From: Oopsacas minuta
Lineage: Eukaryota > Animalia > Porifera
Length of the DNA: 64,000 bases
Reading direction: 5' to 3'
Assembly: GCA_024704765.1 (NCBI GenBank)
Contig: JAKMXF010000343.1
Coordinates: 124,001-188,000 of the forward strand
Below the pieces are notes generated by a model. It was not told the DNA's origin and searched no databases. It was given only the letters and a program-made list of their open reading frames with translations. Shown in pieces: positions 3,069-43,599 of this stretch; within the stretch, counting starts at the first letter, position 1, and every line of letters starts with the position of its first letter. The position numbers and the translations under genes were made by a program.

Positions 3069-3229
3069 CTTAACTGAAGTTATAATTTGCATTTGAATTT
3101 TGTATAAATATACTGAGATATTTGTAATGTATATATAATTATGGTTACTTTAGAAGTCGGATATATTTAAGATATTTTCGTTTGTTCTATTTTTGTTGTT
3201 GTTTTAATAACTGTTTGTAATAGAAATAA

Positions 3230-4770
3230 ATGGCAGATAATAGTGTTGAAATTCTTGAGTCTGAGAAAGGAAGAGATCTGTGTCGAGTAAGATGAGGGGG
3301 TTCCTCAATATTTCTAGGTTTTAGGAAAGATATTCTAACTGAAAATTTGTCAGACAGAGAGAGTGTACTCTTAATTTGTAAGCGTTGCCAAGGAATTCTA
3401 AGAGAAGCGTGTATATCGAGTACTGGGGAACAATTTTGTTCCTGTTGTACCAAGGGAGAGGAACAAACACACCCGAATATATATGTGAGGGACACAGTTC
3501 TCTCACTCAAGTGCTCGTGTCCCTTGTCCCAACGGGGCTGTGAATGGCTAGGAACACTAGGTGAATGTGAGAACCATCTTGATGTGTGTAGTTATGTTCA
3601 TAAGAAATGTAAACTAGGATGTGAGATAGTGTTGCCACGTCATGAGCTAAAAATACATGTCAGTGAACAGTGTAATTTTCGAGAAATACCGTGCGAGCAT
3701 TGTCAGACAGATTTCAAAGCTGGTGATATGCCAGTTCATATAGAAAAGTGTCCAAAAATGCCACTTAAGTGTGAACTTAAATGTGGCACAGTGATGTGTC
3801 GTATGGATATGGCACATCATCTAGAGAAAGATTGTGGTCGTGTAGTAGTGGAATGCAAACTAGACTGTGGACGAAAGCTACCACGTGATGAGCTCAGTAT
3901 GCATGTGAATACAAAGTGTGTACAACGAATGATACCTTGTGAGTACTGTCACATAGATCTCAAAGCTTGTGAAATGACAATTCATTTGGTAGAGTGTCCA
4001 AAAATGCCACTAAAATGTGAACTAGGATGTGGCACAGTGGTTTGCCGAAACAATATGGCACAACACATAGAGGAAGAATGTGTTGAAAAGATGATAGAGT
4101 GTCCGTTTATAAAGTACAAGTGTGAAGTAGGACTAATCAAGAGGAAGGAACTCAATCAGCATTTGGAAGAGAAGAGGACTGAACACACAGAATTGAAACT
4201 CAGTGCTATGGAAGAGATCCTAATGAAACAGAGCGAAAATCCTACACACAACGAAATAATAAGAAAACAGGGCGAAATGATTGAACAAATGTCTCAAGAA
4301 ATGGAATCATTAAAAACAGAGGCAAAACTAAACAAAGAAATTTTAAAGCAAATTTTACCTAAGATCACAAATCTATACTGGAAAATAAAGATGGAAGATA
4401 TACGTACGAGTATAATCGCCATTACGTTATTCCCATACATCTACAAGAACAGTTCCAAGCTGACAGATATATCTTTGCACTTAAGCTAGAGTACACTCTT
4501 GGAGATAATTTCATGATTAAGTTCTACCCTAAGGATGGATTTGATTATGATAAACTAACTCGGCCTTTCAAAGCATTATTTATAACCTCCCTGATCTGTC
4601 ATTACAACCCGAAATACACAAAAAAACTCGGAGCTAAATTGATTGAAGATCAGGAACAAAGATATTTATCACATCTTAACACAATTGCTACTTTCCGCTA
4701 TTCTGATATTACAAAAGAATTTATCAAAGATAAATGCATTGGATTTGAAATATTTGTAAATATTTTGTAA
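3230..4770 (+). pseudogene. TRAF-like pseudogene (one extra 3-finger module)
   Basis: ATG GCA GAT AAT at 3230 is in frame with ORF 3347-4489 but has TGA at 3293-3295; a -1 shift at ~4405-4440 separates the MATH exon-equivalent (4513-4770). Confidence 0.8.
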
Positions 4771-5011
4771 GCTTAGCTGATGATGTATAATAATATTTTT
4801 GAATTATAAATGTATTCAATTGTTGTTTACTTGTGCTTATGATTACAGAGTTATTCTATAATATCAACGAATTTGTAGATCGTTCTTATGAAATGATGTT
4901 TTGTTGACAATATTTATATATGTATAATGTTCCAACACTTTCATTGTCCAGGCCAGGCTACTTCATGTTTCTAAACTATAAATCAATTCTCAGAGTAATG
5001 CACTAGAATAA

Positions 5012-6298: not shown

Positions 6299-6756
6299 AT
6301 TCGTATTTTTCGTATTTTTTTATTTTATAACTATGATAATCTTCCTTTTGTTGTTATTTACCATGTAGTGCTACATTTTCGAACTATTATATTCTATTGA
6401 TCTTATCAAAAGCCGTTGTTAATGAATAACTTGTTTCAGCTCTACATGATGTCCATCTAAGCATGCGGGCTGGCTGGCGGCATTTCAATATAATAATCTC
6501 ATTACTCTGAATTTCAATGACTCGACTTCTAAATATGTTAATTAAGCGTGTTAAAGGTCTGTGAAGATACTTTTCACTCTTACAATATTCATGAAGGAGG
6601 TAAAATGATTCGGGCGGTGGAGCTGAAACAAGTTTCCAACTAACAGTGGCTTGAATGATTAATTAATTACTAGGTGTTGGTCAAATGATATTTGATATGA
6701 GTATGCTCATATGCAGATATATAGTTCTTATGTGTAATACAATCTTACATAGAAAA

Positions 6757-8076
6757 ATGGCTACTAGAAAAACATACAATTCAGTTGATACGAAAAATAA
6801 TTTGTTATTAGTTGAGAGGACAGATGGCGGCTTTGGAGGATATAATGCTGATTTGTTAGTCGACAGTTTAAGTGCGTTAGAATTACAGTTGCTGGTTTGT
6901 ACGAAATGTAACGGGGTAATGAACCAGGCGTGTCAGGTCGGAGAGGACCAATTACACATGTGTGAATCATGTATGGATGAGGGAGATGAATTTCAACCAA
7001 TGAAATTGTCAAGAAATTCCATCCCAGGTTTAAAATCGAAGTGTCCGCTGGATACCAGAGGGTGCATGTGGTCCGGACCATTGGCGGAGACAGAGGCACA
7101 CCTGGACGAGTGCCAGGAGTTTGTCATTAACTGTCCGAACGAGTGTGAGATCATAATTAAACGAAGTGAATTGGAAAATCATTTGACGGAATGCAAATTA
7201 TTAAAAGTTGAATGTGAACATTGTGGTTTGAGAATATTAAATTCTGACTTGGAAGTACACCATGAAGAGTGTTTAGATATTCAGATAACTTGTCCAAACG
7301 AATGTTCTGTAACTCTTAAACGCTGTGAATCAGAGGATCACGTAGCTACTGACTGTCCAAACACATTAATAAATTGTCCTTTTAAGGCGTTTGGTTGTAA
7401 AGAACTTGTAAAAAGAGGCGAACTAGATCAACACCAACAGGATAGCGAATCGAAACACACTCAATTACAGTTGAACTTTGCTTTATCAAAGATAGAATCT
7501 ATGGAAGAAAACAGGAAGAAAGCAGAGAAACAGTACGCGGAGGATGTTGCAGAACTAAAAGAGAGATTAGATACTCAGGAAGAGACGATTATCGGATTGG
7601 AACAAGAAAAATCACAGTTGAGTTCAAAGTTACAAACAAACAGAAAAGGATCATCAAATTCCCTAACTGGCAGTGTCGAGTTAATTCACGATAATATGAG
7701 GTATTCCTCACCATCTTTGAGCACACCGTCCCCTTCCCTAGAAGACCTAGCAAGCAGTATTGTAATCAAAAACATAGGATCGACGGTCGAGTACAAAAAT
7801 ATAATAACTACAACCGAAAAAGTTGTAATACATTTCTTCGATAATTCAAGTGTTTCCCAAATAATTAACTTTCAATACAAACAAACATCAGCAATGTATC
7901 CTAACATCAAGTTCTGCCAGGCTAATGTCAGCAACGATAGAGGTATATCAAAAGTAGCCGGAGTTAAATTCACACATGAGATACATTTCTATAATCAAGG
8001 CGTTAAAATGAGTATATTGAGATGGAAGGACCAGGAGAGCTATGGTTCTGCACTTTATAACCTGGATACAATTTGA
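6757..8076 (+). CDS. TRAF-type zinc-finger protein with coiled coil and C-terminal thioredoxin-like domain lacking CxxC
   Basis: Likely start MATRKTYNS at 6757 (same start as the paralog at 14898); CTKC..CESC, KCPLDTRGCMWSG, several C-x3-C..H-x4-C fingers; C-terminus KVVIHFF..YPNIKFCQANV..VAGVK..EIHFYNQG follows the thioredoxin strand/helix pattern. Confidence 0.75.
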   Translation: MATRKTYNSVDTKNNLLLVERTDGGFGGYNADLLVDSLSALELQLLVCTKCNGVMNQACQVGEDQLHMCESCMDEGDEFQPMKLSRNSIPGLKSKCPLDTRGCMWSGPLAETEAHLDECQEFVINCPNECEIIIKRSELENHLTECKLLKVECEHCGLRILNSDLEVHHEECLDIQITCPNECSVTLKRCESEDHVATDCPNTLINCPFKAFGCKELVKRGELDQHQQDSESKHTQLQLNFALSKIESMEENRKKAEKQYAEDVAELKERLDTQEETIIGLEQEKSQLSSKLQTNRKGSSNSLTGSVELIHDNMRYSSPSLSTPSPSLEDLASSIVIKNIGSTVEYKNIITTTEKVVIHFFDNSSVSQIINFQYKQTSAMYPNIKFCQANVSNDRGISKVAGVKFTHEIHFYNQGVKMSILRWKDQESYGSALYNLDTI

Positions 8077-8202
8077 TACTATTATTAGAATGATGGATTA
8101 TATTGCTATATATATGCAAATGGTTATTTATACTCAAATGTAAATGTAAGAGAGTTTACAAATATTTAATAATTCCTTGATAATCGTCCCGTTTTAGATG
8201 TA

Positions 8203-8485
8203 CAGTCAACTCCTGTTATATCGAAACTCAAGGGACCGTGATAATTACTCCAATATAGCTGATGAAATAAACAGTACACTTGTAGAGCCACCAGTTAATC
8301 TGGCCAACACCTTTATTCCTCTTAATCGGGTCAAAGTGGCCTGGTCCCGATGTGGCCCTAATAAGTGGTGTCTACTGTGTATGTTACTTTTGTTTGTTTG
8401 GCATCAAATCTGTACAATTTAAGACTTGGATATAAGCGGGTACGTATTGCGATATATCCATGTTAGATGTAACGGGAGTTTACTG
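8203..8485. mobile_element. MITE family A (pogo/Tigger-like, TA TSD) with a second MITE nested at ~8272-8380
   Basis: TA|CAGTCAACTCC...GGAGTTTACTG|TA; internal insertion bounded by CAGTACAC...GTCTACTG. Confidence 0.8.
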
Positions 8486-8536
8486 TATGTATATCTATTG
8501 ACCTTTAGCTCTAATTTATTTGTATTATTTAGTTCA

Positions 8537-11500
8537 ATGTCTAGTCGTCATAGAGCAAGAAGCACAACTTCGTCCCGCGGGGGAGCGACAAGAGGAGCAA
8601 CTCCCGCTCGTCGTGATAGAATAAGATCCACACCAACTGTAACAAGCACAGATGGGAATCTGGACTACATCAGTAGATGTGAAAAATGGTGTGCACAATT
8701 GGACAACAATTCTGCCGTAGAAAATATCCTGAATACCTTGGGAGAATTTCAGGTAATGGTTAACAAGGATCAAATGTCTCGGATGGAATTATCTCGATTA
8801 GTTCTGTTGTTTAATCAGCCACAAATAACAGAAAATACTTTTCAAACTATTCTAAGTTTGAACGATTTATTCTGTGTTTTGGTAAACTCTAAGTTTGTTA
8901 CTTCAAAATTTAATCTTTTGAGATTTTTGGTGAAAACTTTGGATGATTTGCAAGCAAATTCAAACACAGAAAATTTGGTTTTTATCCTAAACAATATCAC
9001 GAGTTTGTTAGGAAATTTGATGAACAAGTTCCCAAATGAACACTGCAATTATTCGCATTGTATTTCACGCCTTTTCGAGCGAATAGAATCTGAAAATTTT
9101 GAAGAAATAATTCCTTTTTACGACAGAGAATATATTTACGAACTTAACTTTGAACTTTCGAGAATAACAATCTCAGAAAGAGAAATACAAATACATCAAG
9201 ACAATTACGCTATTTCCTTCCGAGCGATTGAAATATTTCCAAACTATAATGAGATAGAATTTCCTTCAAACACAGAACTCAAAGCGCTAATAAGAGAAGG
9301 ACAATATGAAGATACAGAATCTTATTTGGATATACATTTTAAGCTGTTACGAGAAGATATGATTTATCCTTTGAAAGTGGCAATCAATTTTCTCATCCAA
9401 CTCGATGAAAATTACGCGACTGGATTATTCACATATGACAATGTTAAAATCGCTAAAATATCTACTCTACCACAACATGGATTAGTTTATCGCGTCACTT
9501 TCACACCTTATGGAATGCAGAATATTAAGAGTTATAACTGGGAACGATCCGACAGGTTAAAATATGGATCTCTACTTTGTCTTTCAAAGAAAAATATAGA
9601 AGGTTATCCAACCTTTAAAGATCCTCTCTGGGCTATTGTTATAAACAAGGAAACTCAAAATCGATTCTGTACAACTAACAATAAAATTCCACAACGGATT
9701 TGAAGAAAAATTCGAGTTTAACACAGAATATTTTATGATTGAATCACGTGAAATATATTTCGAAGCATACAGCCATACTCTAAGTGTATTACAAGATACA
9801 TACGAGGATACGTTACCGTTCAAAGATATCCTATTAGGCTATGTGAATACATGCGAAGCGCCTGAATATATTGATGAGGATACAATATTAAATATCGGCG
9901 ATATGGGAATTGATACGAATGAGTTTCGAGTTGTTGATGAATGGCCGGTGTGTGTGGGTATAAATGATTCACAATTTCGAGCTTTAAAATACGCATTTTC
10001 GAGTCGTGTCGCGTTAATTCAGGGCCCCCCTGGCACAGGTAAAACACACGTAGGTCTTAGTATACTGAAAATACTGTTGAGGACGCGAGCAACACAAATG
10101 CGCGTTAGTTATGCGGATCCGAGATTGAAAGAAAGTCTTTGTGATCAGCCAATTTTAATTTTAACTCAGTCAAATCATGTTTTGGATCAGTTTTTGGAAT
10201 TAATAATGATTGAAGACAGGAATATCGTAAGAATTGGATCTCGTAGTGAAAGTGAAATTATTAAAGCACATTCACTTTCTGAGATAAGAAAATATTTCTG
10301 GAAAGGGGATAAACCATCTCTGACCATTTTGAATTTACGGAGTGCTCAAATATCCGTGAGAAAGGAATTGGACAGACTTGAAAAGATAATAGAAAAATAT
10401 GCACGAGATTTCCAAAACGCAACGAAATTCCCAAAAACTATAATTTCGGAGGAAACTCTTAGGATAGTCGCTTCTAAAGAACATTTTGATAGTTTGTATG
10501 ATACTCATCAAGCAGGGTTTAAAGTGGTTATGAATAAGAGACAGAGTATGTGTGATATCTGGCTACGAGAATTGGGGTTACAAGCTAAACTAGGGGAAAT
10601 TCTTCTAACAAAACAGATCCCGTTAGAGAAAAATCCGTTTGCGATTATAGCAGCTAAAGATTTGACTATTCCTGATGGAAATATTATCGATAAATATCTA
10701 ATTTTAGAAAGGAGGGTTGAGTATTTGGATTTAAAAGAAGAAATTGAGGTCGAGGAGACGGCGACTAGTAACCCACAATCGCCGATAAAACCGCAGGAAA
10801 CCCGCAAAGCAATAAAAGAGCGAAAAATCCTCGAAGAAGCATCGAAAAAATTCAAACAAGCTATCAAAGAAAATCAAAAATTTTTGTCACAAGATATTCC
10901 AGATCGCATTTTAGAAACGAGAAATCTTTGGGTTTTGAAACAAGAAGACAGAGAATTGCTGTATAAATATTGGGTGAAACGAATGATACATGCATATGGC
11001 CTGGTTGTCAAGAGCTATTCTGACAAATATGCAAGTAAAATCAAACAATTAGAAGTGATCAACACTTCGATAGATTTATACATTCTTAAACAAGCTACTA
11101 TCGTTGGCATGACAACGACAGGTGCGGCTAGGAATTCTAAATTAATTCGTAAACTTAAACCGAGGATAGTTATAGTAGATGAAGCGGGTGAAGTTCTAGA
11201 AGCTCATATTATTACAAGTTTATCGCAGACAGTGGAGCATTTAATAATGATCGGAGATCCACAAATGTTAAAACCTTCAACAGCAGTTTCTAGACTCTCC
11301 GATCAATTCAATCTGAACCTCTCCCTATTTGAGAGATTAATCATAAATGATTTCCGCCATGCTACACTCACTCTACAACACCGTATGCGACCGGAAATAT
11401 CCTCTATTATGCGACTCATCTACCCAATGATGGAGGATAATCATATAGTAGCTGACTACGAGCATATTAATGGTATTACTAATAATATGTATTTTGTAAG

Positions 11501-13583
11501 TCATAATTTCTATGAAGATAAACTAGCGGAAGATAGTACAAGTAGGGCCAACACGTACGAGGCGAAATTCGTCGTGGAATTAGCTTTGTATTTAGTGAAA
11601 CGCGGCTATAAACAAGATGAAATTACTATTCTTACATTCTATAATGATCAGAAGTATTTGATTGAAGATAGCCTCGCGAAAAGAATCCGCGATAATGTAA
11701 TTAAAGTGAGTACTGTTGATAAATTTCAAGGTGAAGAGAATGAGATAATTCTACTCTCAATTGTCAGGGGTAATAAGGAGAATTATATCGGCCACTGCTG
11801 TGTGGATAATCGTACAGGTGTAGCCTTCTCAAGGGCTAGGTCAGGATTCTATGTTATCGGGAATGGAAATAGTTTTCGTATCGCGAGCAAGAAAACAACC
11901 TCTGGGCTATGGGAGAGAATTCTAGATCTATTTACAGAATTGAATTGTATTGGCAGTAGTTTACAATTATACTGTAGATTACATGGAGAATTTTATGACG
12001 TTGTAAACAGTGAAGATTTCAAAAGAATAAACGCCGATGGTTGTTTCAAAAGTTGTGAAAAAAGTGCAACTATTAATCTTTCACAAAAATGTAATAAATC
12101 ACATCCCTGTGGTCATCATTGTCTTGGAAAAATCGGAGAAGATTGCAGTCAAATTCCTTGTCTTTTTAACAAAACAAAACAAATGAATTGTGGACACGAA
12201 TTACATTTTCCATGTTCTCTCTCTACCTCTGATGTCTTATCATTGAAATGTGAAATTAAATGTGAATTCATGTTGAAATGCGGCCATGCATGTAAAGGCA
12301 CATGCTTCTTATGTTACCATGGTAACCATTTGGAATGTATAGAGAAATGTGGTCGGAATTTAGTTTGTAATCATGACTGCAGTGAGAACTGTCATTATCC
12401 GTACGAATGTCCGCCGTGTAGGAAAGTTATGACCAACAATTGTGAACATATTAAGAGCTCAATTCTCTGTGGAGATTCGCGAGTTTTGTGTACAAAGCCT
12501 TGTGAGTGGAAATGCGAGCATTTGGAATGTACAATGAAATGTTCTGAAATATGTGACAGGCCTCGTTGTAACGATAGATGTAGTTTATTGTTAAACTGTG
12601 GGCATGTGTGTATGGGTATTTGTGGAGAGAAATGTCCACCTATCTGTCGAAAATGTAAATCTTTTGATGAGAATTTCCAGAAGTATTTCGGTGATGAACA
12701 GAACGCCTTCGCTAATTTTATTATTTTACAAGATTGCGGGCATATTTTTGAAGTTTCAGGACTGGATAGACATGTCAAGAAATCTCTAAAAACCGCAGGA
12801 ATTAACCAATTACCACAATGTCCTAAATGCTCAACATTTATACTAAAGCCATTCAGATACCAAAAACAAGTAAATCGGATTATTTGCAATATCGAAAAAG
12901 TTAAACACAGAATTGCGAAAGACAATATTGAAATTATTCAAGAAAACTTGGAAAAACTTAGGGAATTTTTGTCACAAAACATTTTGCATATTCAGCTACT
13001 CAAACAATTAGAAAAAACCCCAATCTTTATGACATTACAAGGAGATTGCAAGTACACAAATCTTCATATTTTCAGCGAACTTTTGAAAATTCTTGTTGCA
13101 TTTTTTACACAAGATTACCCACTTGAAGTATGGACAGAAGATACACCGATAATGAACTTTTTCAATTCAGAACAATTGGAATATCTCTTGAATATTTCCC
13201 CGAAAGATTCAAAACCTGATGGCCAGCGTGTGCTAAAGGAATTGCTGTTAAAATTCCGAATATGCCCTCTGTACACAATTTTCAAACTTGCCGATTCGGA
13301 CAAACTTCAATTATGGGAAAATAAGCTATTTACAGAAATCAAGACTAAGTTTAACAGCCAAACAGCTGCAGGGGTAATGGATGAAATGTTTCTAGCATTT
13401 TGTGAAGCTTTTCTCTTCAGAATTAACGAAAGTTATAATTTGAATTTCCCAGCAATGAAATATGAAAGTTTTAGAAGAAAAGTAACTGATAATGCTATAG
13501 GCTGGGGAGTATGTATAGATGATCATGTCTATGAAATTCTAGAAGGGAAAGAACCGAATTCGTGTCCAGTTTGTAAGAAATAA
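8537..13583 (+). CDS. ZNFX1: ZNFX1-like SF1 (Upf1-like) RNA helicase with NFX1 zinc fingers, RING-like segment and degenerate RZ finger; one frameshift at ~9645-9700
   Basis: MIESREIYFEAY, Walker A QGPPGTGKT, VDEAGEV, IGDPQMLKP, LSLFERL, LQHRMRPEIS, DKFQGEE, VAFSRAR, repeated C-x3-L-x-CGH-x-C NFX1 units; ORF 8537-9703 joins 9735-13583 through a +1 shift (KLKIDSVQLTIKF..FMIES). Confidence 0.9.
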
Positions 13584-13998: not shown

Positions 13999-14898
13999 TT
14001 AGGACTTGATGGGATATTTCCTTAGAAGTCTATTTTTCTTCGAAACCTCTTTCTTCAAAACCTCTTTCTCATTAACCTCTTTCTCATTAACCTCTTTCTT
14101 CAAACTCTCCAATGTCTTTTGTTGCTCTATTGACTTACGTGTTAATTCTGTAACCTTTCTTTCCAACTGGTCTACCTTATTAACTGTATACATCATGGTC
14201 ATGTTTAGATGTTTAAACTCATCAGTGCTCTTGTGGTCCATTAATTCACACCTCTTGATAGTTTCTTTACAACCAAAATTCTTGTAATCACAAGCCACAA
14301 GCTCGTTAGGACAATCCACTTTTAAATGAGACGCTATCATTCTACGTTTCAAGCTAGCAGTACAGTCGTTGGGGCAAGTTACAACAAACTCATTACACAT
14401 TCCATTATGAAGTTGTATATCCATGAATTGTATTTCCAGGTTACAATATTCACATGACACTTTCCTAAGTTCGCATTTTTTCATATGAAACTCCGTTTCA
14501 GATCGTCTTAAATTCATTATACAATTGTTGGGACAATTTGTAATGAATTCTTCACACACACCAAGGTGTATCTCCACCTCACTTATAGTTCCATTCCATT
14601 TACACCCTCTGGTTGCTAAGGGACATCTAACTTTGAGAGTAGCAATTCTTTTCCTAGAGCGTACCATGGGGATAACGTCTGTACCCGGATTACTACAAGA
14701 TGCACAAACAGGAGTTTGTTCTTCTCCAAACTGAGAAGCGTTACGCATAATTCCTTTACATTTCGTACATAAATAATCCTCACATTCCAATTCACCTAAC
14801 CTGTCGATTAGCAAATCTGTGTTATATCCAGATCCGTTTTCTACATTCAAAAGTATGTCTGTATTGTCAATAGAATTATACGTTTTTCTAGTCGCCAT
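13999..14898 (-). CDS. TRAF-type zinc-finger protein without MATH domain (299 aa), paralog of the 6757 gene
   Basis: MATRKTYNS start, CTKC..CASC, RCPLATRGCKWNG, TRAF fingers, ends in KEVNE/KEVLK/KEVSK repeats. Confidence 0.8.
   Translation of the reverse strand: MATRKTYNSIDNTDILLNVENGSGYNTDLLIDRLGELECEDYLCTKCKGIMRNASQFGEEQTPVCASCSNPGTDVIPMVRSRKRIATLKVRCPLATRGCKWNGTISEVEIHLGVCEEFITNCPNNCIMNLRRSETEFHMKKCELRKVSCEYCNLEIQFMDIQLHNGMCNEFVVTCPNDCTASLKRRMIASHLKVDCPNELVACDYKNFGCKETIKRCELMDHKSTDEFKHLNMTMMYTVNKVDQLERKVTELTRKSIEQQKTLESLKKEVNEKEVNEKEVLKKEVSKKNRLLRKYPIKS
14043..14101. repeat. 15-bp coding tandem repeat (about 4 units)
   Basis: aacctctttcttcaa / aacctctttctcatt / aacctctttctcatt / aacctctttcttc. 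Confidence 0.85.
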
Positions 14899-20378: not shown

Positions 20379-20498
20379 TTTATGTTGATAATAAAAACGA
20401 TAATAATAATAATTTGAAAGTGTAACACGACAAGAATGATAAAACAACAAAATATATTTATACAATAATTCTAATGCAAATTATAACTTCAGTTAAGT

Positions 20499-21991
20499 TT
20501 ATTGAATACATACACTAATCTCTAATTCAATGCAATCATCTTTGATAAATTCTTTTGTAATATCAGATCTGGGGAATCTAGCAATTGTGTTAGGAGAAGA
20601 AAAATCTCCTTGTTCCTGAACTTCAATCAATTTAGCTCCTAGTTTTTTTGTGTGGTTCGGTTTGTCATTACAGATCTGGGAGGTTATAAATAATGCTTTG
20701 AAAGGCCGAGTTAGTTTATCAAAATTAAATCCATCCTTAGGGTGGAATTTAATCACGAAATTATCTCCAGGAGTGGAGTCTAGCATAAGCGTAAAGATAT
20801 ATGTGTCAGCTTGGAACTGTTCTTGTAGATGTACGTAATAGCGATACCTCGGACGTATATCTTCCATCTTTATTTTCCAGTATAGATTTGTGATCTTAGG
20901 TAAAATTTGCTTTAAAATTTCAGATTTGTTTAGTTTTGCCTCTGTTTTTAATGATTCTATTTCTTGAGACATTTGTTCCATCATTTCGCCCTGTTTCATC
21001 AGGATCTCTTCCATTGCACTGAGTTTCAATTCAGTGTGTTCAGTCCTCTTCTCTCCAAATGCTGATTGAGTTCCTTCCTCTTGATTAGTCCTACTTCACA
21101 CTTGTACTTTATAAACGGACACTCTATCATCTTTTCAACACATTCTTCCTCTATGTGTTGTGCCATATTGTTTCGGCAAGCCACTGTGCCACATCCTAGT
21201 TCACATGTTAGTGGCATTTTTGGACACTCTACCAGATGAATTGTCATTTCACAAGCTTTGAAATCTATGTGACAGTACTCACAAGGTATCATACGTTGTA
21301 CACACTTTTCATTCACATGCATATCGAGTTCATCACGTGGTAACTCTATTCCACATCCTAGTTTGCATTTCTCTACCACACGACCACAATCTTTCTCTAG
21401 ATGATGTGCCATATCCTTACGACACACCACTGTGCCACATTTAAGTTCACACTTAAGTGGCATTTTTGGACACTTTTCTATATGATCTGGCATATCACAA
21501 ACTTTGAAATCTGTCTGACAATGCTCACAAGGTATTTCTCGAAAATTACACTGTTCACTGACATGTATGGATAGCTCATGACGTGGTAACACTATATCAC
21601 ATCCTAGTTTACATTTCTCATGAACATGACTACACACATCAAGATGGTTCTCACATTCTCCTAGTGTTCCTAGCCATTCACAGCCCCGTTGGAACAAGGG
21701 ACACGAGCACTTGAGTGAGAGAACTGTGTCCCTCACGTATATATTTGGGTGTGTTTGTTCCTCTCCCTTGGTACAACAGGAACAAAATTGTTCCCCAGTA
21801 CTCGATATACACGCTTCTCTTAGAATTCCTTGGCAACGCTTACAAATTAAGAGTACACTCTCTCTGTCTGACAAATTTTCAGTTAGAATATCTTTCCTAA
21901 AACCTAGAAAGAGGGAGGAACCCCCTCTTCTAAGTCGACACAAATCTGTTCCTTTCTCAGACTTAATGATTTCCAAGGAAATATCTGCCAT
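20499..21991 (-). pseudogene. TRAF-like gene with a single -1 frameshift (one extra 3-finger module)
   Basis: ORFs 21991-21026 and 21029-20499 are collinear; ctctcc at ~21051-21056 versus ctcctcc in paralogs. Confidence 0.75.
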
Positions 21992-22156
21992 TTATTCCTG
22001 TTACAAAAAGTTATTAAAACAACAACAAAATAGAACACCAAACAAAAATATCATAAATATATCCTACTTCTAAAGTAACCATAATTATTTATACATTACA
22101 AATATCTCAATATATTTATACAATAATTCTAATGTAAATTATAACTTTAGTTAAGT

Positions 22157-23956
22157 TTATTGAAAACATACACTAATCTCGAAGTCAAAGCAATTATCTT
22201 TGATAAACTCTTTTGCAATAACAGATCTAGGGCATTTAGCAATTGTGTTAGGAGGGGAAAGATAATCTTGTTCCTGAACTTCAATCAATCTACCTCCTAG
22301 TTTTTTTGTGTACTTCGGGTTGTCATGACAGATCAGGGAGGTTATAAATACTGCTTTGAAAGGCCGAGTTAGTTTATCAAAATCAAATCCATCCTTAGGG
22401 TGGAATTTAATCACGAAATTATCTCCAGGAGTGTACTCTAGCATAAGCGTAAAGATATATCTACCAGTTTGAAACAGTTGTTGTACATGTGTGGGAAAAA
22501 AGTAATGGAGATCACGCCTCCAACTTTTCTCTTCCATTTTTATTTTCCAGTATAGATTTGTGATTTTAGGTGAAATTTGCTTTAAAATTTCTTTGTTTAG
22601 TTTTGCCTCTGTTTTCAATAATTCCATTTCTTGAGACATTTGTTCCATCATTTCGCTCTGTTGCATAACAATCTCTTCCATAGCACTGAGTTTCAATTCT
22701 GTGTGTTCAGTCCTCTTCTCCTCCAAATGCTGATTGAGTTCCTTCCTCTTGATTAGTCCTACTTCACACTTGTACTTTCTAAACGGACACTCTATCATCT
22801 TCTCTACACATTCTTCTTGTATGTGTTGTGCCATATTGTTCCGGCAACCCACTGTGCCACATCCTAGTTCACATGTTAGTGGCATTTTTGGACACTCTAC
22901 CAGATGAATTGTCATTTCACAAGCTTTGAAATCTATGTGACAGTACTCACAAGGTATCATACGTTGTACACACTTTTCATTCACATGCATATCGAGTTCA
23001 TCACGTGATAACTCTATTCCACATCCTAGTTTGCATTTCTCTACTACACGACCACAATCTTTCTCTAGATGATGTGCCATATCCTCACGACACATCACTG
23101 TGTCACATTTTAAATCACACTTAAGTGGCATTTTTGGACACATTTCTATATGATCTGGCATATCACAAACTTTGAAATCTGTCTGACAATGCTCACAAGG
23201 TATCATACGTTGTTCACACTTTGTATTCACATGCATATCGAGTTCATCACGTTGTAGCGCTATTCCACAGCCTAGTTTGCATTGCTCTATCACACGACCA
23301 CAATCTTTCTCTAGATGATGTGCCATATCCTCACGACACATCACTGTGCCACATTTTAAATCACACTTAAGTGGCATTTTTGGACACTTTTCTATATGAT
23401 TTGGCATATCACAAGCTTTGAAATCTTTCTTACAATGCTCACAAGGTATTTCACGAAGTTTACACTTTTCACTGACATGTACTTTTAGCTCATGACGTGG
23501 TAACTCCATATCACATCCTAGTTTACATTTCTCATGAACATGACTACATACTTCAAGATGGTTCTCACATTCTCCTAGTGTTCCTAGCCATTCACAGCTT
23601 CGTTGGAACAAGGGACACGAGCACTTGAGTGAGAGAACTGTGTCCCTCACATGCATATTCGGATGTGTTTGGTCCTCTCCCTTGGTACAACAGGAACAAA
23701 ATTGTTCCCCAGTACTCGATATACACGCTTCTCTTAGAATTCCTTGACAACGCTTACAAACTAGGAGTACACTCTCTCTGTCTGACAAATTTTCAGTTAG
23801 ATTATCTTTCCTAAAACCTAGAAAGATTCCTCCCTCACCTCTTACTCGACACAGATCTCTTCCTTTCTGAGACTTAAGAATTTCAACACCTCTTGTCGCT
23901 CCCCCGCTGGGTGAAGTTGTCCCTTTTGTCTCTTTTTTTATTTTACCCCAAAACAT
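22157..23956 (-). CDS. TRAF-like protein with two extra 246-bp zinc-finger modules and a ZNFX1-derived N-terminus
   Basis: Uninterrupted ORF, likely start ATG 23956 (MFWGK...TTSPSGGATRG then VEILKSQKG); acaagg registers at 23441, 23195 and 22949 are 246 bp apart. Confidence 0.88.
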   Translation of the reverse strand: MFWGKIKKETKGTTSPSGGATRGVEILKSQKGRDLCRVRGEGGIFLGFRKDNLTENLSDRESVLLVCKRCQGILREACISSTGEQFCSCCTKGEDQTHPNMHVRDTVLSLKCSCPLFQRSCEWLGTLGECENHLEVCSHVHEKCKLGCDMELPRHELKVHVSEKCKLREIPCEHCKKDFKACDMPNHIEKCPKMPLKCDLKCGTVMCREDMAHHLEKDCGRVIEQCKLGCGIALQRDELDMHVNTKCEQRMIPCEHCQTDFKVCDMPDHIEMCPKMPLKCDLKCDTVMCREDMAHHLEKDCGRVVEKCKLGCGIELSRDELDMHVNEKCVQRMIPCEYCHIDFKACEMTIHLVECPKMPLTCELGCGTVGCRNNMAQHIQEECVEKMIECPFRKYKCEVGLIKRKELNQHLEEKRTEHTELKLSAMEEIVMQQSEMMEQMSQEMELLKTEAKLNKEILKQISPKITNLYWKIKMEEKSWRRDLHYFFPTHVQQLFQTGRYIFTLMLEYTPGDNFVIKFHPKDGFDFDKLTRPFKAVFITSLICHDNPKYTKKLGGRLIEVQEQDYLSPPNTIAKCPRSVIAKEFIKDNCFDFEISVCFQ

Positions 23957-24039
23957 TTGAACTAAACAATACAAATAAAATTACAGCTAATAGGCAATAG
24001 ATTTAATTATTAATAGTATAATACAAATATTCAATTAAT

Positions 24040-24188
24040 AGTCTACTCCCATTATATGGAAGTCAGAAATTGTACAAATATGATCCAAAACAGTCAAAGT
24101 AATATACTTTCATCAGCTATACCCGCTCCGCTTTTATCAAAGTAATTACCGCGGTCCCTTGAGCTTCGATATAACTGGAGTTGAGAGT
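24040..24188. mobile_element. MITE family A
   Basis: GTCTACTCCC..TTGTACAAATATG..GCGGTCCCTTGAGCTTCGATATAACTGGAGTTGAG. Confidence 0.75.
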
Positions 24189-24282
24189 ACAAAATCTTAC
24201 AATTTATACATTCTTCCGGTACAATTAATAATATCATATAAATACATTTATTTACAAATTCAAAGTAAACAAAAATGATATC

Positions 24283-24648
24283 ACATCCTAGTTTACATTT
24301 CTCATGAACATGACTACATACTTCAAGATGGTTCTCACATTCTCCTAGTGTTCCTAGCCATTCACAGCCTCGTTAGAACAAGGGACACGAGCACTTGAGT
24401 GAGAGAATTGTGTCCCTCACATGCATATTCGGATGTGTTTGGTCCTCTCCCTTGGTACAACAGGAACAAAATTGTTCCCTAGTACTCGATATACACGCGT
24501 CTCTAAGAATTCCTTGACAACGGGTACAAACCAGGAATGTATTATCTCTGTCTGACAAATTTTCAGTCAAAATATCTTTCCTAAATCCTCGAAATATTCC
24601 AGCCTCGTCTTCGACACGACACAGATCTGTCAGCATTTTATCTGCCAT
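24283..24648 (-). pseudogene. Truncated TRAF-like 5' fragment
   Basis: MADK..DLCRV..FRKDILTENL..CSCPLF then TAA (CAA in paralogs); homology stops after KCKLGCDI; 24283-24368 is identical to 23511-23596 of the adjacent gene. Confidence 0.85.
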
Positions 24649-27832: not shown

Positions 27833-29053
27833 GAAAGTGTAGAGCTTTCAAATAATTGTTTTTGTTAAGTTAAATAGAGAAAATAATGGGCAAATGGTAT
27901 GTATACGTCGTTAATCGAGCCAACACCTTGTATGGCCGTAATGGGGTCAAAATGGCCTGTCCCACGAATATAAATTTAACAGAATTGACAGGTTCTTTCG
28001 ATAACATATACGAATATATTCTAGCAATTCGTTACTATTCTTCCAGCTGTATACAAACTATAGCTTCAAAAGCTCAGTTATATTCTTAACACAGATTCCC
28101 GAGCTTCTCTGTAGTATTCAATATTTCTATTGAATCATTTTATGTATTACAAAACAATTATGAATTATTTGTCTCACTTATTGGTTTCTGATATTGTATC
28201 CTAAGTTCTAAGGTAGCGGCTGTAATGTGCCTTATAACACAATTAAGGTAATTGTATTATAAGGAAAATTACAGCCTACACAAACGGGACTGTGGAAACG
28301 GAGTAAAAATGAATAGAATGAATTCCTCTTGCCATACAAATGAACTTCTATAAACGGGGTATCATCTTCGGCGTCCCTGGCACCACATCTGTGGAGGTTA
28401 CACTGTAGTCCACATAATTGTTCAGATCCATATTTGCCCAATTGTCCCGGATTTGCAACTATTCTCCATTTTTGTTGTTTGTTGTTGTTGTTGTTACATG
28501 AATTTTAGTTTCATATCAAAATACTAATTAATACTTCTCTAACTTCCTATACAAATTAACTGCCGTGATTAATCCAAAGGGTTTCCATCGTACAAACCTG
28601 GACATTACAGTTATAACATACGAATAAATATAGCACTGATATATCTCATCGAATAATTTTAGTGAAAAAGAGTTTACTTCCCATCTGTAAACTCACCAAA
28701 ATTACACCACAATTCTACGATATACAAACAGATGCGGAAAGACGTATTTTTACAAAATATTTGTAGATTTTCTTTCTAACGGTTAATTAAGCTTCTTAAG
28801 AGAAATACGGTCGGAACACCTGATACAAATGATAACAGACATATATATTTTCTACTGTATTATTGAACTCAAAGCCCTATCAGGATATTCTATAGTTTAA
28901 AAGTATTCTAACGAGGTTAGTCATGGGGGATAAGGTAATACTGCTGTCATAGATTCGTATATAATTGTATTAGTTGCATATTAGTTACGAAATGCAATAG
29001 TTCGAGTGGATAAGGTGTTTAGCTGCGGCAGGTGTTACCTGACTGTTGGAATG

Positions 29054-31606: not shown

Positions 31607-34600
31607 ATGACTACTGTAATAGAGATTTCTAAACTAGGAGAAATCCTAAGAAAGGAATCTCTCCCAATGAAAGCGAGAAACAGAGCATTATTCGGGCTAC
31701 GAGCTGTTACAGATATAGAATTGAGTAAGCTAGCAATTCAGGAAATAAATTCAACTTTCAAAGATAACTCAGCTCTATTGAAACATGAATGTGCTTACTG
31801 TCTCGGGCAAATGACGTCACGTAATGCTGTACCGTTATTGATAGATGTATTACATGACGTAGGACAGGAAGTTATTGTCAGACACGAAGCTGGAGAAGCT
31901 CTAGGTTAATAAAGATAATAAATATAGTTTATTTGCATCTAGGACATTCCTATGGTACATAACAATAACAAGGTAGCCTCATAAGATCAGCTGGCTAATT
32001 ATTTTAGATTTATCGGATTTCTTCTTTTAATGAAAATATATTTTTGCATAGAACTTGGTTGGGTTTACTGTTTTTGCAGCTTTTTTGGCTTTTGATGCAT
32101 ACTTTCGATTCTTAACACTGGCACGTCTAAATAACAGAAACTTATATTTTTGAAAACATACAAATATTTTGTGAGTGATTAACTACAGCCAATTCCCGTT
32201 ATATCGAAGCAGATAATTACTTCGATATCACCGATGGAGTATATGTGTCTTTGATGGTTTGGGGCCATATTTGTACAATTTTAGAATCCGATATAGGCGG
32301 GTATTTGGATATATCCGTGTTCTATATAACGGGAGCTGATTGGGATTTTCTTAAATTTCATCTTTGCACACTCACATTCGCATACGACCGGCAAAATGTG
32401 TCTCTGTTATAAAACTGAATTCACTCATATATGCATATACAGGTGCTATTGGAGACCCTACAGCTATTGAGCATTTACAGAAACACATAACAGATACAAG
32501 CAAACCACTCAGTGAGACTTGTATTATTGCAATAGATAGAATTAATTTCTATCAGAAGCAAAAAACTGAGAAAATAGAATTTAAAGACAATAACCCATTC
32601 CTATCAGTGGACCCAGCGCCTCCTTGGCTAGAGGGGAATTGTGAAAAATGGAGAGAGACACTTCTAGACGCGAATCAGACACTTTTTGATAGATATAGAA
32701 GTTTATTTTCACTGAGAAATGAAGGAACAGATAGCTGTGTTCTGGCTATTTGTGAAGCATTCAATGATAAGAGTATATTATTGAGACACGAGGTAATGTA
32801 TGGCAAACTTAAATGACCAGTTACATGGCAGTAGAACTCGAATAGGGTGTACCCTTTGGGGGTGAAAATAGTAAGTACTATCCGAGTTCTATTGTACTTC
32901 CATAAGAAATCCTCCCAAAAATAAAAATATAGGATAGTGCGTATATTTCACGCGAAAGCCGGCGATCATGTCGGGGAGGGCGAATGAGTCCAATTGATCC
33001 TCAATAACTTTAGAATCGACAATTCGTTGTTGGAGATTTCTCCATAACAACAACCTCTAATACAAGAATGTATAATTGTCCGATAAAGTAGGAAACATTA
33101 CAAATAATAGCCATATATAGTATGCATAGGTGTTCATGACTAGTGACTAATAAATGGAAAGGATGTAATTAGTTTATATTAATTAGATTTGTGGTTGAAT
33201 CCCGACAGCATATATCATATAACACACAGCTATTAGCCAGTAGGAACTCCATATAACATACATATATGATATTATTGAAAGATATTTGAATAGTAAATAT
33301 GCGTCAAGGAAAAGTTGGAGAATTGCTATGGCACGAAAATTACGAGAATAGGAAAACTCCAATACTCAAAAAAGGGAAAATGGGTGACCGTGAAAATGAA
33401 CTGAGCTTGCCAGAGGCTATGGATATTGACTTAGAAACTGGAAATATATATATCACAGATTTGGTAAAAGCACATTTAAAAGTATTTAACGAAGATGGCG
33501 AACATTTATACAATTTCTCACGAAAATTGTGTCAAAATGAAAAATCAATTCCACCATTCTGTGTTGCTATTTGTAGCAGTATCGTATATGTTAGCAATTG
33601 TACTGAAAATTGTATTTCAATATTTAATACAGAAGGATATTTCCTGACAGAATTCGGAAAGAAAGGTACTGCTTTAGGAGATCTGACATCACCTTATAGT
33701 TTGGCGGTTCGTGAGACAGATCAAGACTTATTTGTGTGTGAATTCGAGTCGAATCAACGCGTGCAAATATTCTCAAACAGTTGCCCATACTTTTCACAAA
33801 TAAAGAACAAACATTCACCAAGATTCGTACGTGTAACACGTGACAACATATTTGTTTTATATAAAAACAATCCTTGTTTGTATAAATACAATAACAAATA
33901 TGAATTATTAGATAAACCCATTCTTACACAATCACTAGGAAAGAATAAACAATCACAAACTCCATCAAGTTTCTGTGTAGACAAATTTAATAACATTTTA
34001 ATCGCAGATTGGGGGACGAATCTTATCTCAATTTTCAACCAAAAAAGTCAATTAATTTCTACTATTAGTAATGATATAGAATGTCCAGAGGCTGTTGCTA
34101 CCGATAATAAAGGAAATATTGTCCTGGTGTCTTTCAGGGAAGAGTTTTGTATACAAAAATTCTGAATTTGTATATTAATTTGTGTTTTTGTATATATTTA
34201 TGAAATATAAAAATTATTGAATTTCTTCCAATTTTAATTACAGTCAACTCTCGTCTTATCTAAGCTCAAGGAACCGCGATAATTACTTCGATATAACCGA
34301 ATAAAATTGACAGTTTGGGACCATATTCGCATAATTACATACTTCGATATATCCGCGTTTGAGATAACGGGAGTTCACTGTAGTGCAATAATAGTATTTG
34401 CAAATCAGTGCAATCTTCCTGCTCAAGTACAACCATCCAAACAACAATTTGACATATAATCTCTATTTATAGATAGCCTACGTATTAGGACAGCTACAAA
34501 ACAAACTATCAATCCCAGCCTTACAATCCCATCTCTCAGATCTTACAGAGAACTACATGGTAAGACATGAGAGCGCTGAGGCATTAGGTTCTATTGCAGA

Positions 34601-42321: not shown

Positions 42322-43599
42322 TCAAAAAACTTTCAAACAACTCACTGGCCTCTGACAACTAACTATAATCTTGTTATGAGCTATCACAACTCCCATACAC
42401 CCGTCAACAACTTCACTCAAAGGTCTATCTTTACCCATCTTCAAAATCATCTTCAATTCCTTACTAACAAATTCTAAAACTTTAATAGCGTCCGCATCGA
42501 AATCTGAAATAATAATTGAACCATCTGGACCAAAGCAAAAAGATTTTGCATTCAGAATTACGTAATTAGAGCCTTTTTTCAAGAAACGTTCCTCGAATTG
42601 ATGATTTTCCCGATTGAAAGAGTGCAGGAAGTGACCTTCTCCGGCGTCAATCACGTAAATCTTATCTTTATGAAACTGGATATATTGCGGTTTATATAAT
42701 TCGTCTTTCCCGAATTCTTCTTGGAAAACAAGCGTTTTATTGAACACACAAACACGTTTGTTATCCAAATCCGCTACGTATATTCTATTTGTATTAGCTT
42801 TGATATCAACAGGGAAACTCAAACATGTTTTCTCACAACCAGGAGTTTCCTTCTGTTTCCGAATATATTCGTATCCCGGATTCGAGAACTGGTAGATAGT
42901 TCTACCAACACTATCAGCGATATAACAGTATGACTCATCAACAGCTACCGAGCATGGAAAATCAAATTTATCATCACCAAACTCATTCACAATTGTCCCT
43001 TCAGTTGTCATAACACATATTCTCCGGTTATTCGCGTCAGGAACGTAAAGATAGTTACTACCTATATCATAAGCGAGCTTCACAGGGCAGTTCAAAACTC
43101 GCTCACCCATTGTTCGTGCTGCGCGACTTTTGGTGGAATAATCGATTTGGATTACTTGTTGATTGTTTTGATTGGGAGTGTCGTTGAAATCCGTTTTCGA
43201 ACTGGGACTTTTTAAACTCGGAAAAAGACTATCTAAGTATTCTTGAAACGTTTCTGCTGGCAGGGGAGTGAAATTCGAATCGAGAGCAAAGTTTTCGCTT
43301 TTTAGACAATCGATTTCCTTCTCTATAGCGATCATTGAAGTATTACGAATTTCAGAAATTGTGTTCTCCCGGATCGTTTGTTCAATACTTTTAAGTACAC
43401 TTTCCAGTTCTTTTATCGATTTATTTTTTATCGCTTTCCTAGACTCATAGTCCTTGAAATTCTCACGAGCTTCGCAAAGAAGGATCACCCTCTTATTGTT
43501 CAATATGTAAATCCAATCATCAAACATTTTATTAATTACATTCTCCAAAACGACAATATCTTCCATCTCAGGAGGAATAACATTCTCATTAGTGCACAT
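42322..43599 (-). CDS. Coiled-coil + NHL-repeat protein (TRIM-NHL-like, no RING or B-box)
   Basis: N-terminal helical coil; YLYVPDANNRRICV, FDFPCSVAVD, LSFPVDIK..RIYVADLDNKRVCVF, FCFGPDGSIIISD. Confidence 0.85.
   Translation of the reverse strand: MCTNENVIPPEMEDIVVLENVINKMFDDWIYILNNKRVILLCEARENFKDYESRKAIKNKSIKELESVLKSIEQTIRENTISEIRNTSMIAIEKEIDCLKSENFALDSNFTPLPAETFQEYLDSLFPSLKSPSSKTDFNDTPNQNNQQVIQIDYSTKSRAARTMGERVLNCPVKLAYDIGSNYLYVPDANNRRICVMTTEGTIVNEFGDDKFDFPCSVAVDESYCYIADSVGRTIYQFSNPGYEYIRKQKETPGCEKTCLSFPVDIKANTNRIYVADLDNKRVCVFNKTLVFQEEFGKDELYKPQYIQFHKDKIYVIDAGEGHFLHSFNRENHQFEERFLKKGSNYVILNAKSFCFGPDGSIIISDFDADAIKVLEFVSKELKMILKMGKDRPLSEVVDGCMGVVIAHNKIIVSCQRPVSCLKVF

Follow-up and report, generated by a model that had tools for sequence, protein, structure and literature searches.

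How does a gene of the TRAF family come to begin with the start codon of a helicase? The question is raised by a locus of the hexactinellid (glass) sponge Oopsacas minuta, a 64-kb stretch of contig JAKMXF010000343.1 (assembly GCA_024704765.1), hereafter the window, which holds an array of TRAF paralogs together with a gene of the ZNFX1 helicase family. A preliminary description of this stretch had proposed that one TRAF paralog owes its leader, start codon and N-terminus to ZNFX1. The core of this proposal holds, and the direction of the transfer is set by the ZNFX1 orthologs: very probably, a member of the TRAF array in the O. minuta lineage is a genuine chimeric gene at the DNA level, with a head copied from the neighboring ZNFX1, a degree of confidence that we attach to this statement of origin only. 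The homology between the two heads, its polarity from ZNFX1 to TRAF, the exact junction, the intact open reading frame (ORF) and the TRAF architecture of the product make up the observed part of the account. The features concerned are collected in Table 1.

The evidence begins with the shared block itself. In a blastn comparison within the window, the head of ZNFX1 (8490-8595, plus strand) and that of the chimera (24005-23889, minus strand) match at 75% identity over 117 columns (E = 3e-15), the only such pair outside repeats in the entire 64 kb. Direct alignment of the two heads puts the homology far beyond chance, with a Smith-Waterman score of 93 compared with 14.6 +/- 2.3 in 2000 shuffles, none of which reached 93. 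Within the block, the 19-mer GCGGGGGAGCGACAAGAGG occurs exactly twice in the window, with none expected. The identity is unevenly distributed, amounting to about 87% in the leader, about 67% in the first ~40 coding bases and 19/19 in the final 19 bases, and both proteins read TTS..GGATRG. The strings singled out in the preliminary description were found in place; the stretch after the ATG that it took to be unmatched, however, is still homologous, at the said 67%, and is interrupted in the chimera by a 9-nucleotide (nt) A-rich in-frame insertion. RNA structure was considered as a cause of the perfect identity in the final bases and was rejected, the z-scores being -0.3 and +0.8.

At its inner end the block is sharply delimited. 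Homology to ZNFX1 ends exactly where homology to the TRAF paralogs begins, at 23889, and the abrupt switch to the TRAF consensus that had been described is thus confirmed to within one base. Canonical paralogs begin ATGGCAGATAATAGTGTTGAAATT; the chimera enters their consensus at GTGTTGAAATT, codon 5, with the canonical ATGGCAGATAATA replaced. At its outer end, each copy of the block is preceded by a miniature inverted-repeat transposable element (MITE). Downstream of the junction and upstream of both MITEs no similarity between the two loci was found, the scores being those of shuffled sequence (for the flank left of the MITE, 898 of 2000 shuffles reached the observed value). As a separate observation, an imperfect inverted repeat, GCGGGGGAG ... 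CTCCCGC (8577-8607), brackets the breakpoint in ZNFX1, and the TRAF copy has its left arm only; the predicted fold of this repeat is no more stable than that of shuffled sequence.

Table 1. Positions of the chimeric gene, its donor and the adjoining elements (numbered from the first letter of the window; a slash marks the junction)
Feature	Position	Strand	Details
Chimeric TRAF ORF (P0001), 599 residues	22157..23956	-	residues 1-23 from ZNFX1; residue 24 onward TRAF
ZNFX1-derived block in chimera	23889..24005	-	49-nt leader 24005-23957, ATG 23956-23954, codons 2-22 and two bases of codon 23
Donor-type block at ZNFX1	8490..8595	+	47-nt leader, ATG 8537-8539, first 19 codons and two bases (MSSRHRARSTTSSRGGATRG)
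Junction	23888..23889	-	...GCGACAAGAG(G)/TGTTGAAATT; microhomology at most 1 nt (one G); frame kept
AT-rich spacer, 33 nt	24006..24038	-	between MITE and block; ZNFX1 locus has only 2 nt there
Tc1/mariner-like MITE upstream of chimera	24041..24187	-	TA at 24189-24188 and 24040-24039; internal deletion near right end
Same-family MITE upstream of ZNFX1	8203..8485	+	TA at 8201-8202 and 8486-8487; nested insertion of ~110 nt (~8270-8379)
ZNFX1-family helicase gene (donor)	8537..13583	+	ZNFX1 domain and SF1 helicase core
Collinear stretch: chimera body, spacer and next TRAF unit (21991)	20442..23889	-	3.5 kb versus 1372-4828 (+), 87%
AT-rich stretch, ~87 nt, with AATAAA	24190..24277	-	between TRAF fragment and MITE
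Truncated TRAF pseudogene fragment	24278..24648	-	just upstream of chimera; canonical tagaataaATGGCAGAT start; ends after ...LGCDI

Which of the two genes is the source can be read from the relatives of ZNFX1. A search with the large helicase ORF retrieved full-length relatives of 1675-1687 residues at 68-73% identity from sponge-derived assemblies in ENA. The orthologs P0122-P0124, from three other sponge assemblies and 72-73% identical, start MSR.YRQRGASRSRGGA(T/V)RG, the same peptide in the same place, and the first ORF of the O. minuta gene aligns residue 1 to residue 1 of a further relative (P0127). The conservation extends into the leader, the last ~25 nt of which (...TTTATTCGTTTGTTAG.., a T-rich tract ending in TTAG) are shared before the ATG by the ortholog loci L001, L002 and L009; it becomes visible only when these three are read together, as the leaders of O. 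minuta and L002 alone show no significant similarity (144 of 2000 shuffles). Across the block, 18 site patterns unite the chimera with O. minuta ZNFX1 as opposed to one that unites it with the orthologs (two orthologs compared). The presence of the same peptide and leader in the orthologs, together with this 18:1 ratio, shows that the block is native ZNFX1 sequence and that the transfer went from ZNFX1 to TRAF, after the O. minuta lineage had split from these relatives. Private changes number nine in the chimera and one in ZNFX1, and the poorly matching stretch after the ATG mainly reflects later change on the TRAF copy. Other ZNFX1-family proteins of O. minuta have unrelated N-termini, which leaves the neighboring gene as the only candidate donor seen. 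With the divergence lying mostly on the TRAF side, there is no need for a ZNFX1 paralog as donor, as had been contemplated earlier.

The graft appears only once in what was surveyed. Among 120 TRAF matches and 12 short ones retrieved with the first 150 residues, P0001 is the only TRAF-like protein that bears the motif, and six other O. minuta loci with a total of 132 kb, among them two other ZNFX1 loci and four TRAF clusters, yielded no further copy of the block. A common dispersed repeat, which would have undermined the preliminary description, is thus not what we see: there is no third copy in 196 kb, and the coding part sits natively at the same position in the orthologs.

The remainder of the chimera belongs where it is. 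From codon 5 onward, its body, the adjoining spacer and the next TRAF unit run collinear from 23889 to 20442 with 1372-4828, which makes the TRAF part a resident member of the array and not an inserted copy. Pfam confirms the gene names given earlier and recovers TRAF-type zinc-finger genes at 1359, 3230, 5012 and 6685 on the plus strand and at 14898, 21991, 23956 and 26511 on the minus strand. In the youngest subfamily of this array most members are pseudogenes, and the chimera is its only intact gene, the siblings all being frameshifted or stopped: unit 1359 changes frame twice, unit 3230 is stopped at codon 22 and also frameshifted, and unit 21991 changes frame near 21047. The claim that the chimera is the largest intact TRAF copy applies to the window only. 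Identity along the young units is mosaic, which suggests gene conversion. The chimera differs from its nearest paralogs by a synonymous divergence (dS) of 0.16-0.21, and the similar divergence of its leader from that of ZNFX1 (~0.14) places the graft in the last round of array amplification.

Just upstream of the chimera lies a truncated TRAF fragment (24648-24278), which contains an in-frame TAA at 24375-24373 and is 92% identical to positions 23858-23508 of the chimera. Splicing of this fragment into the chimera was considered and seems unlikely, as good donor and acceptor sites are absent. The 87 nt that follow it (24190-24277) look by eye like the canonical spacer between units; the similarity is not significant (p = 0.1-0.28), and these nucleotides have no match in 196 kb of O. 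minuta sequence.

What would the product look like? From residue 24 onward, a Cys-rich N-terminal region leads into six zf-TRAF stretches (PF02176, E = 3e-29), which are followed by a coiled coil and a MATH fold. A tandem repeat of ~246 nt within the gene (22807-23533, minus strand; 23533-23053 versus 23287-22807, 83% identity) adds zf-TRAF units and thereby makes the chimera longer than its paralogs. The coiled-coil and MATH part has no match in Pfam. An AlphaFold2 model of residues 400-599 built on an alignment of 37 sequences shows a long helix and a beta-sandwich, with a predicted local distance difference test (pLDDT) score of 87.7. The top Foldseek matches of this model in the PDB are the TRAF domain of TRAF5, the MATH domains of SPOP and USP7, and TRAF6/TRAF4; on the strength of the model, the C-terminus is predicted to be a coiled coil (TRAF-N) followed by MATH/TRAF-C. 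In the Cys-rich N-terminal region, a test for a RING yielded only a sub-threshold zf-RING_6 match (E = 0.03; 14.6 bits versus a cut-off of 35). The grafted 23 residues, MFWGKIKKETKGTTSPSGGATRG, are lysine-rich and of low complexity. An RGG-like peptide, as had been proposed, is not supported: the TRAF copy reads SPSGGATRG, having lost the arginines and the sole RGG of the ZNFX1 head. As to the start of translation, an in-frame stop at 23983-23981 precedes the ATG, making the ZNFX1-derived ATG the first one, and no second ATG occurs in frame until codon 101, which lies beyond the N-terminal region common to the paralogs. Thus, only the ZNFX1-derived ATG retains this shared region. In the protein collection, no transcript-derived sequence with the junction was found.

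The donor is assigned by its ZNFX1 domain (PF25396, 1e-11) and its SF1 helicase core (AAA_11/AAA_12; PF13086, 9e-27; PF13087, 9e-36), and is 31-34% identical to vertebrate ZNFX1. For NFX1-type or RZ-type zinc fingers, no Pfam match was obtained in residues 720-1282 of its second ORF even at E <= 1, and PF20173 is also absent from the close orthologs. In five related assemblies the gene is a single ORF of 1675-1687 residues, whereas here it is split by a +1 frameshift, an extra C at ~9662 (9655-9670) between the N and D codons of ...ETQN/DSVQL.... Since all of the other 1282 codons are open, the extra C is either a lesion of very recent date or an error of the assembly.

How, then, did the head of ZNFX1 reach a TRAF gene? 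A possible clue is provided by the MITEs that accompany both copies. The elements of their family consist of TA, CAGTCAACTCC...GGAGTTGACTG and TA, as seen in full copies at ~30031 and ~34251, measure ~165 bp and have no ORF; by their terminal inverted repeats, TA duplication, length and many copies they are MITEs of the Tc1/mariner type (Stowaway-like). The presence of one family upstream of both blocks in the same relative orientation, as had been noted, is confirmed. At ZNFX1, the block starts 4 nt from the terminal repeat of the MITE (2 nt past the flanking TA); at the chimera, it is separated from it by TA and the 33-nt spacer (35 nt from the terminal repeat). Both MITEs have in common a private 13-mer, ATAGCTGATGAAA (family consensus ATAACCGATGGAA), and a private GGATCA (GGGACC in other copies), variants that these two alone share among the ~10 copies in the window that retain the segment. 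From the local MITE density we estimate a chance of ~0.6% that such an adjacency of MITE and block arose independently. The family numbers 18-21 loci in the 64 kb of the window versus three in the 132 kb from the six other O. minuta loci (L003-L008) and is about ten times denser here, which looks like a local hot spot, perhaps brought about by local hopping. An origin of the 33-nt spacer by local duplication of the leader was considered and is not significant (210 of 2000 shuffles). The nested ~110-nt insertion in the ZNFX1 MITE is absent from other copies, and part of it recurs at 27910-27963 (82% over 56 nt); it is probably a second small element.

From these elements a sequence of events can be put together. 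A copy in the TRAF array, a tandem array of recent amplification, lost its canonical leader and the first 13 coding bases, and the lost head was replaced by a leader of ~49 nt, an ATG and ~20 codons copied from ZNFX1, 15 kb away on the opposite strand, for a gain of 117 nt, or of ~300 nt if, as is probable, the MITE abutting the leader was copied too. With the join in frame, the ZNFX1-derived ATG now opens a TRAF ORF of 599 codons. The process may well have been ectopic repair or template switching between neighbors, most simply anchored on the MITE copies and completed by an end-joining step that used 0-1 nt of microhomology, a tentative reconstruction that we would place just short of an even chance. 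Gap repair anchored on a MITE would explain why one edge of the homology coincides with the end of a MITE.

Several observations weigh against this account, most of them against the MITE link. The two MITEs, at 71.6% identity, resemble each other no more closely than they do other copies, and the star-like MITE tree does not group them together. The MITE at the TRAF gene lacks the nested insertion of its counterpart, and the TRAF locus has the extra 33-nt spacer. The ZNFX1 gene of a related species (L001) has a MITE of this family 24 nt before its ATG, whereas L009 and L002 have none; this is therefore an independent hit in another lineage, suggesting that the head of ZNFX1 was struck by MITEs repeatedly and independently. 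Whether the MITE travelled with, or anchored, the copied piece is thus about evenly balanced. Moreover, the truncated TRAF fragment and the 87 nt left of the MITE show that the site of the chimera was rearranged more than once. The search for extra copies covered ~0.3% of the genome, and rare further copies of the block could lie elsewhere. Finally, the pairwise ratios of nonsynonymous to synonymous divergence (dN/dS) of 0.4-0.6 do not set the chimera apart from its broken siblings.

The transfer could have proceeded without any MITE, a break at the TRAF head having been filled by ~106-117 nt from the 5' end of ZNFX1, as DNA or as mRNA/cDNA, and the MITEs having inserted independently; were RNA the template, the block would begin on its left side at the start of the ZNFX1 transcript. 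Such a short templated insertion we regard as rather unlikely, although both edges of the homology are abrupt with unrelated flanks beyond, the two MITEs are not each other's closest relatives, MITEs number 18 per 64 kb here, an independent hit struck the same gene head in L001, and the 33-nt spacer fits separate events. It does not readily accommodate a left edge of the block only 2 nt past the TA of the ZNFX1 MITE (4 nt from the terminal repeat), the same relative orientation of both MITEs, or the private 13-mer and GGATCA that, among ~10 copies in the window, are confined to these two. Alternatively, the chimera could mark the junction of a tandem or complex segmental duplication, in which a segment from TRAF codon 5 to ZNFX1 codon 20 was joined end to start (a join of the 8595/1372 type) and later inverted and moved past ZNFX1. 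The order and orientation of the joined pieces match such a junction, in O. minuta as in five related assemblies ZNFX1 is directly preceded by TRAF genes of its own strand, and the related assemblies lack the minus-strand TRAF block at 20.4-26.5 kb. Yet the homology upstream of ZNFX1 stops at the MITE, with neither 8077-8198 nor gene 6685 found upstream of the chimera; the flanking TRAF genes differ greatly in age (dS 0.16 to 0.56; 43% protein identity between T14898 and T6685); and additional steps of inversion and deletion are needed, all of which makes this origin improbable. An inverted duplication of the whole array (C-D-ZNFX1 head/A-B) was rejected, as it fits the gene order but not the ages. 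Rejected as well was a composite transposon made of the left end of the MITE and a cryptic right end, GGGAGCGAC, inside ZNFX1, since the TRAF junction shows no TA duplication and what lies left of the MITE is not the TRAF 5' end.

More radical doubts concern the reality of the chimera and its life as a gene. That the block is a dispersed repeat or a chance resemblance, that it moved from TRAF to ZNFX1, or that the locus is misassembled is almost certainly wrong. In favor of such readings, the leader is AT-rich and abuts a repeat, and the search covered only 196 kb of the genome; but the coding part is native to ZNFX1 in its orthologs from three other species, no TRAF-family paralog has the block, and neither the E-value of 3e-15, the failure of all 2000 shuffles to reach the observed score nor the restriction of the 19-mer to two places agrees with chance. 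Misassembly was rejected because the copy is 20-25% diverged from its source, which excludes a misjoin at the level of reads, and carries the in-frame 9-nt insertion. A less extreme possibility is that the chimera is real but a dead relic, neither transcribed nor translated, with an ORF intact by chance or youth. Most of its array neighbors are pseudogenes, its dN/dS is only mildly below 1, and the donor ZNFX1 is itself frameshifted in this assembly. However, 599 codons are open in the chimera while three siblings of similar age each have frameshifts or stops, the junction and the 9-nt insertion both keep the frame, and the module of T-rich tract, TTAG and ATG has been kept at 87% identity; we consider a dead relic rather unlikely.

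If the gene is alive, what did the graft contribute? A T-rich tract ending in TTAG, 3-7 nt before the ATG, is conserved across four species in ZNFX1 and its orthologs and is present in the chimera. Canonical TRAF copies have an analogous YAG and AATAA before their ATG (tAGAATAA-ATG; units 1359, 3230, 5012, 6757, 21991 and 24648). In both families, the motif may be a splice acceptor, used in cis or in trans (3' acceptor-like); for another glass sponge, Aphrocallistes vastus, trans-splicing of a spliced leader is reported (PMC10282587). Judging from the sequence, the graft probably, if by no means surely, rescued a decapitated duplicate by providing the T-rich tract, TTAG and start codon as a splice-acceptor-like or core-promoter-proximal module, and the gene would be functional. 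A regulation in common with ZNFX1, suggested as a possibility in the preliminary description, is unlikely; upstream of the ATG, the two genes share only 47-49 nt and possibly the MITE. Highly improbable, but the most novel, is a combination of these elements in which the T-rich/TTAG/ATG module is a portable start module moved by MITE-anchored ectopic repair within the conserved TRAF-ZNFX1 cluster, the TRAF transcript being processed, for example by spliced-leader trans-splicing, and co-induced with the antiviral-type helicase. If this were true, transposons would have helped to rewire a cluster of innate-immunity genes in an animal of an early-branching lineage.

How does the locus compare with known systems? 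Chimeric genes that arose when a duplicate captured the 5' end of another gene include Drosophila jingwei and Sdic and the tandem-duplication chimeras. As in these, there are two identifiable parents, a sharp junction and a new in-frame ORF for which the donor provides the start codon and the sequence before it, and the O. minuta chimera arose within a young, duplicate-rich region. Unlike in these, the captured piece is very small (a 49-nt leader and ~22 codons) and contains no domain, exon shuffling is not involved as the genes are without introns at this point, and donor and recipient are neighbors in a conserved cluster of immune type. Ectopic gap repair and templated filler insertion are known to follow the excision of transposons such as the P element, Tc1 and Ac/Ds, or double-strand breaks. 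The O. minuta locus resembles their products in the copying of nearby sequence in either orientation, with one edge at a transposon end and the other closed with 0-1 nt of microhomology, and in the deletion at the TRAF recipient; it differs in that no excision footprint or polymorphism is visible, the MITE copies are not demonstrable sisters, and the event is old (~15-25% divergence). With gene capture by Pack-MULEs and Helitrons (transduplication) it shares a gene fragment beside the end of a transposable element; here, however, the fragment lies outside the terminal repeats and not between them, MITE and block are not enclosed by a second terminal repeat or a target-site duplication, and the left flank is not a TRAF 5' end. 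The recipient is like vertebrate TRAF proteins in its TRAF zinc fingers, coiled coil and MATH fold but has no detectable RING, and the donor is like vertebrate ZNFX1 in its ZNFX1 domain and SF1 helicase core but has no detectable NFX1-type or RZ fingers. Overall, the graft of a ZNFX1 5' end onto TRAF follows a known type of route, in which a young duplicate takes the 5' end of a neighbor; transposon-associated ectopic repair is likewise an established means of moving short flanking pieces, and no new mechanism is required.

The setting in which this took place is conserved in part. Each of the six genomes compared (O. minuta and L001, L002, L009, L010 and L011) has one or more TRAF genes immediately before ZNFX1 and on its strand. 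Downstream of ZNFX1, O. minuta, L001, L009 and L010 have an FtsH/M41-like gene that runs on the opposite strand; at this place L002 gives an AAA_lid_3 match only, and L011 nothing. A B9-C2 gene and then a TLC-domain gene come after the M41-like position in O. minuta, L001 and L002. Only in O. minuta are the M41-like gene and B9-C2 separated by a TRAF block, the one on the minus strand at 20.4-26.5 kb to which the chimera belongs. An older, second TRAF subfamily, whose members start MATRKTYNS.D (6685-8076 and 13999-14898), flanks ZNFX1 on both sides in inverted orientation; these two genes, T6685 and T14898, find their best match in one another, with a protein identity of only 43%. The remaining genes of the window are the multi-exon FtsH/M41-like gene and B9-C2, TLC-domain, NHL-repeat, RWD/RING, DHHC, Brix and TPR genes. 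Scattered over its second half are three NHL-repeat, six-bladed beta-propeller genes (33299-34165, 42322-43599 and 53664-54938), which probably form another small local family. Scans of the window with Rfam and for tRNAs found nothing.

As it stands, the head-graft is an evolutionary curiosity rather than a new mechanism. It appears to be previously undescribed, since neither gene family is mentioned in the O. minuta genome paper. Its value lies in being a cleanly resolvable case of the birth of a new gene through capture of a 5' end, and this in the hexactinellid sponges, for which very little functional genomics is available: donor, recipient, polarity and exact junction are all defined, and five outgroup assemblies can be used for dating. 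The clean polarity, the available outgroups and the conserved adjacency of TRAF and ZNFX1 are what make it worth following up. In vertebrates, the TRAF and ZNFX1 families act in the same antiviral signaling context. If the chimera is co-expressed with ZNFX1, it would offer a handle on whether the linkage of the two families in these sponges is functional.

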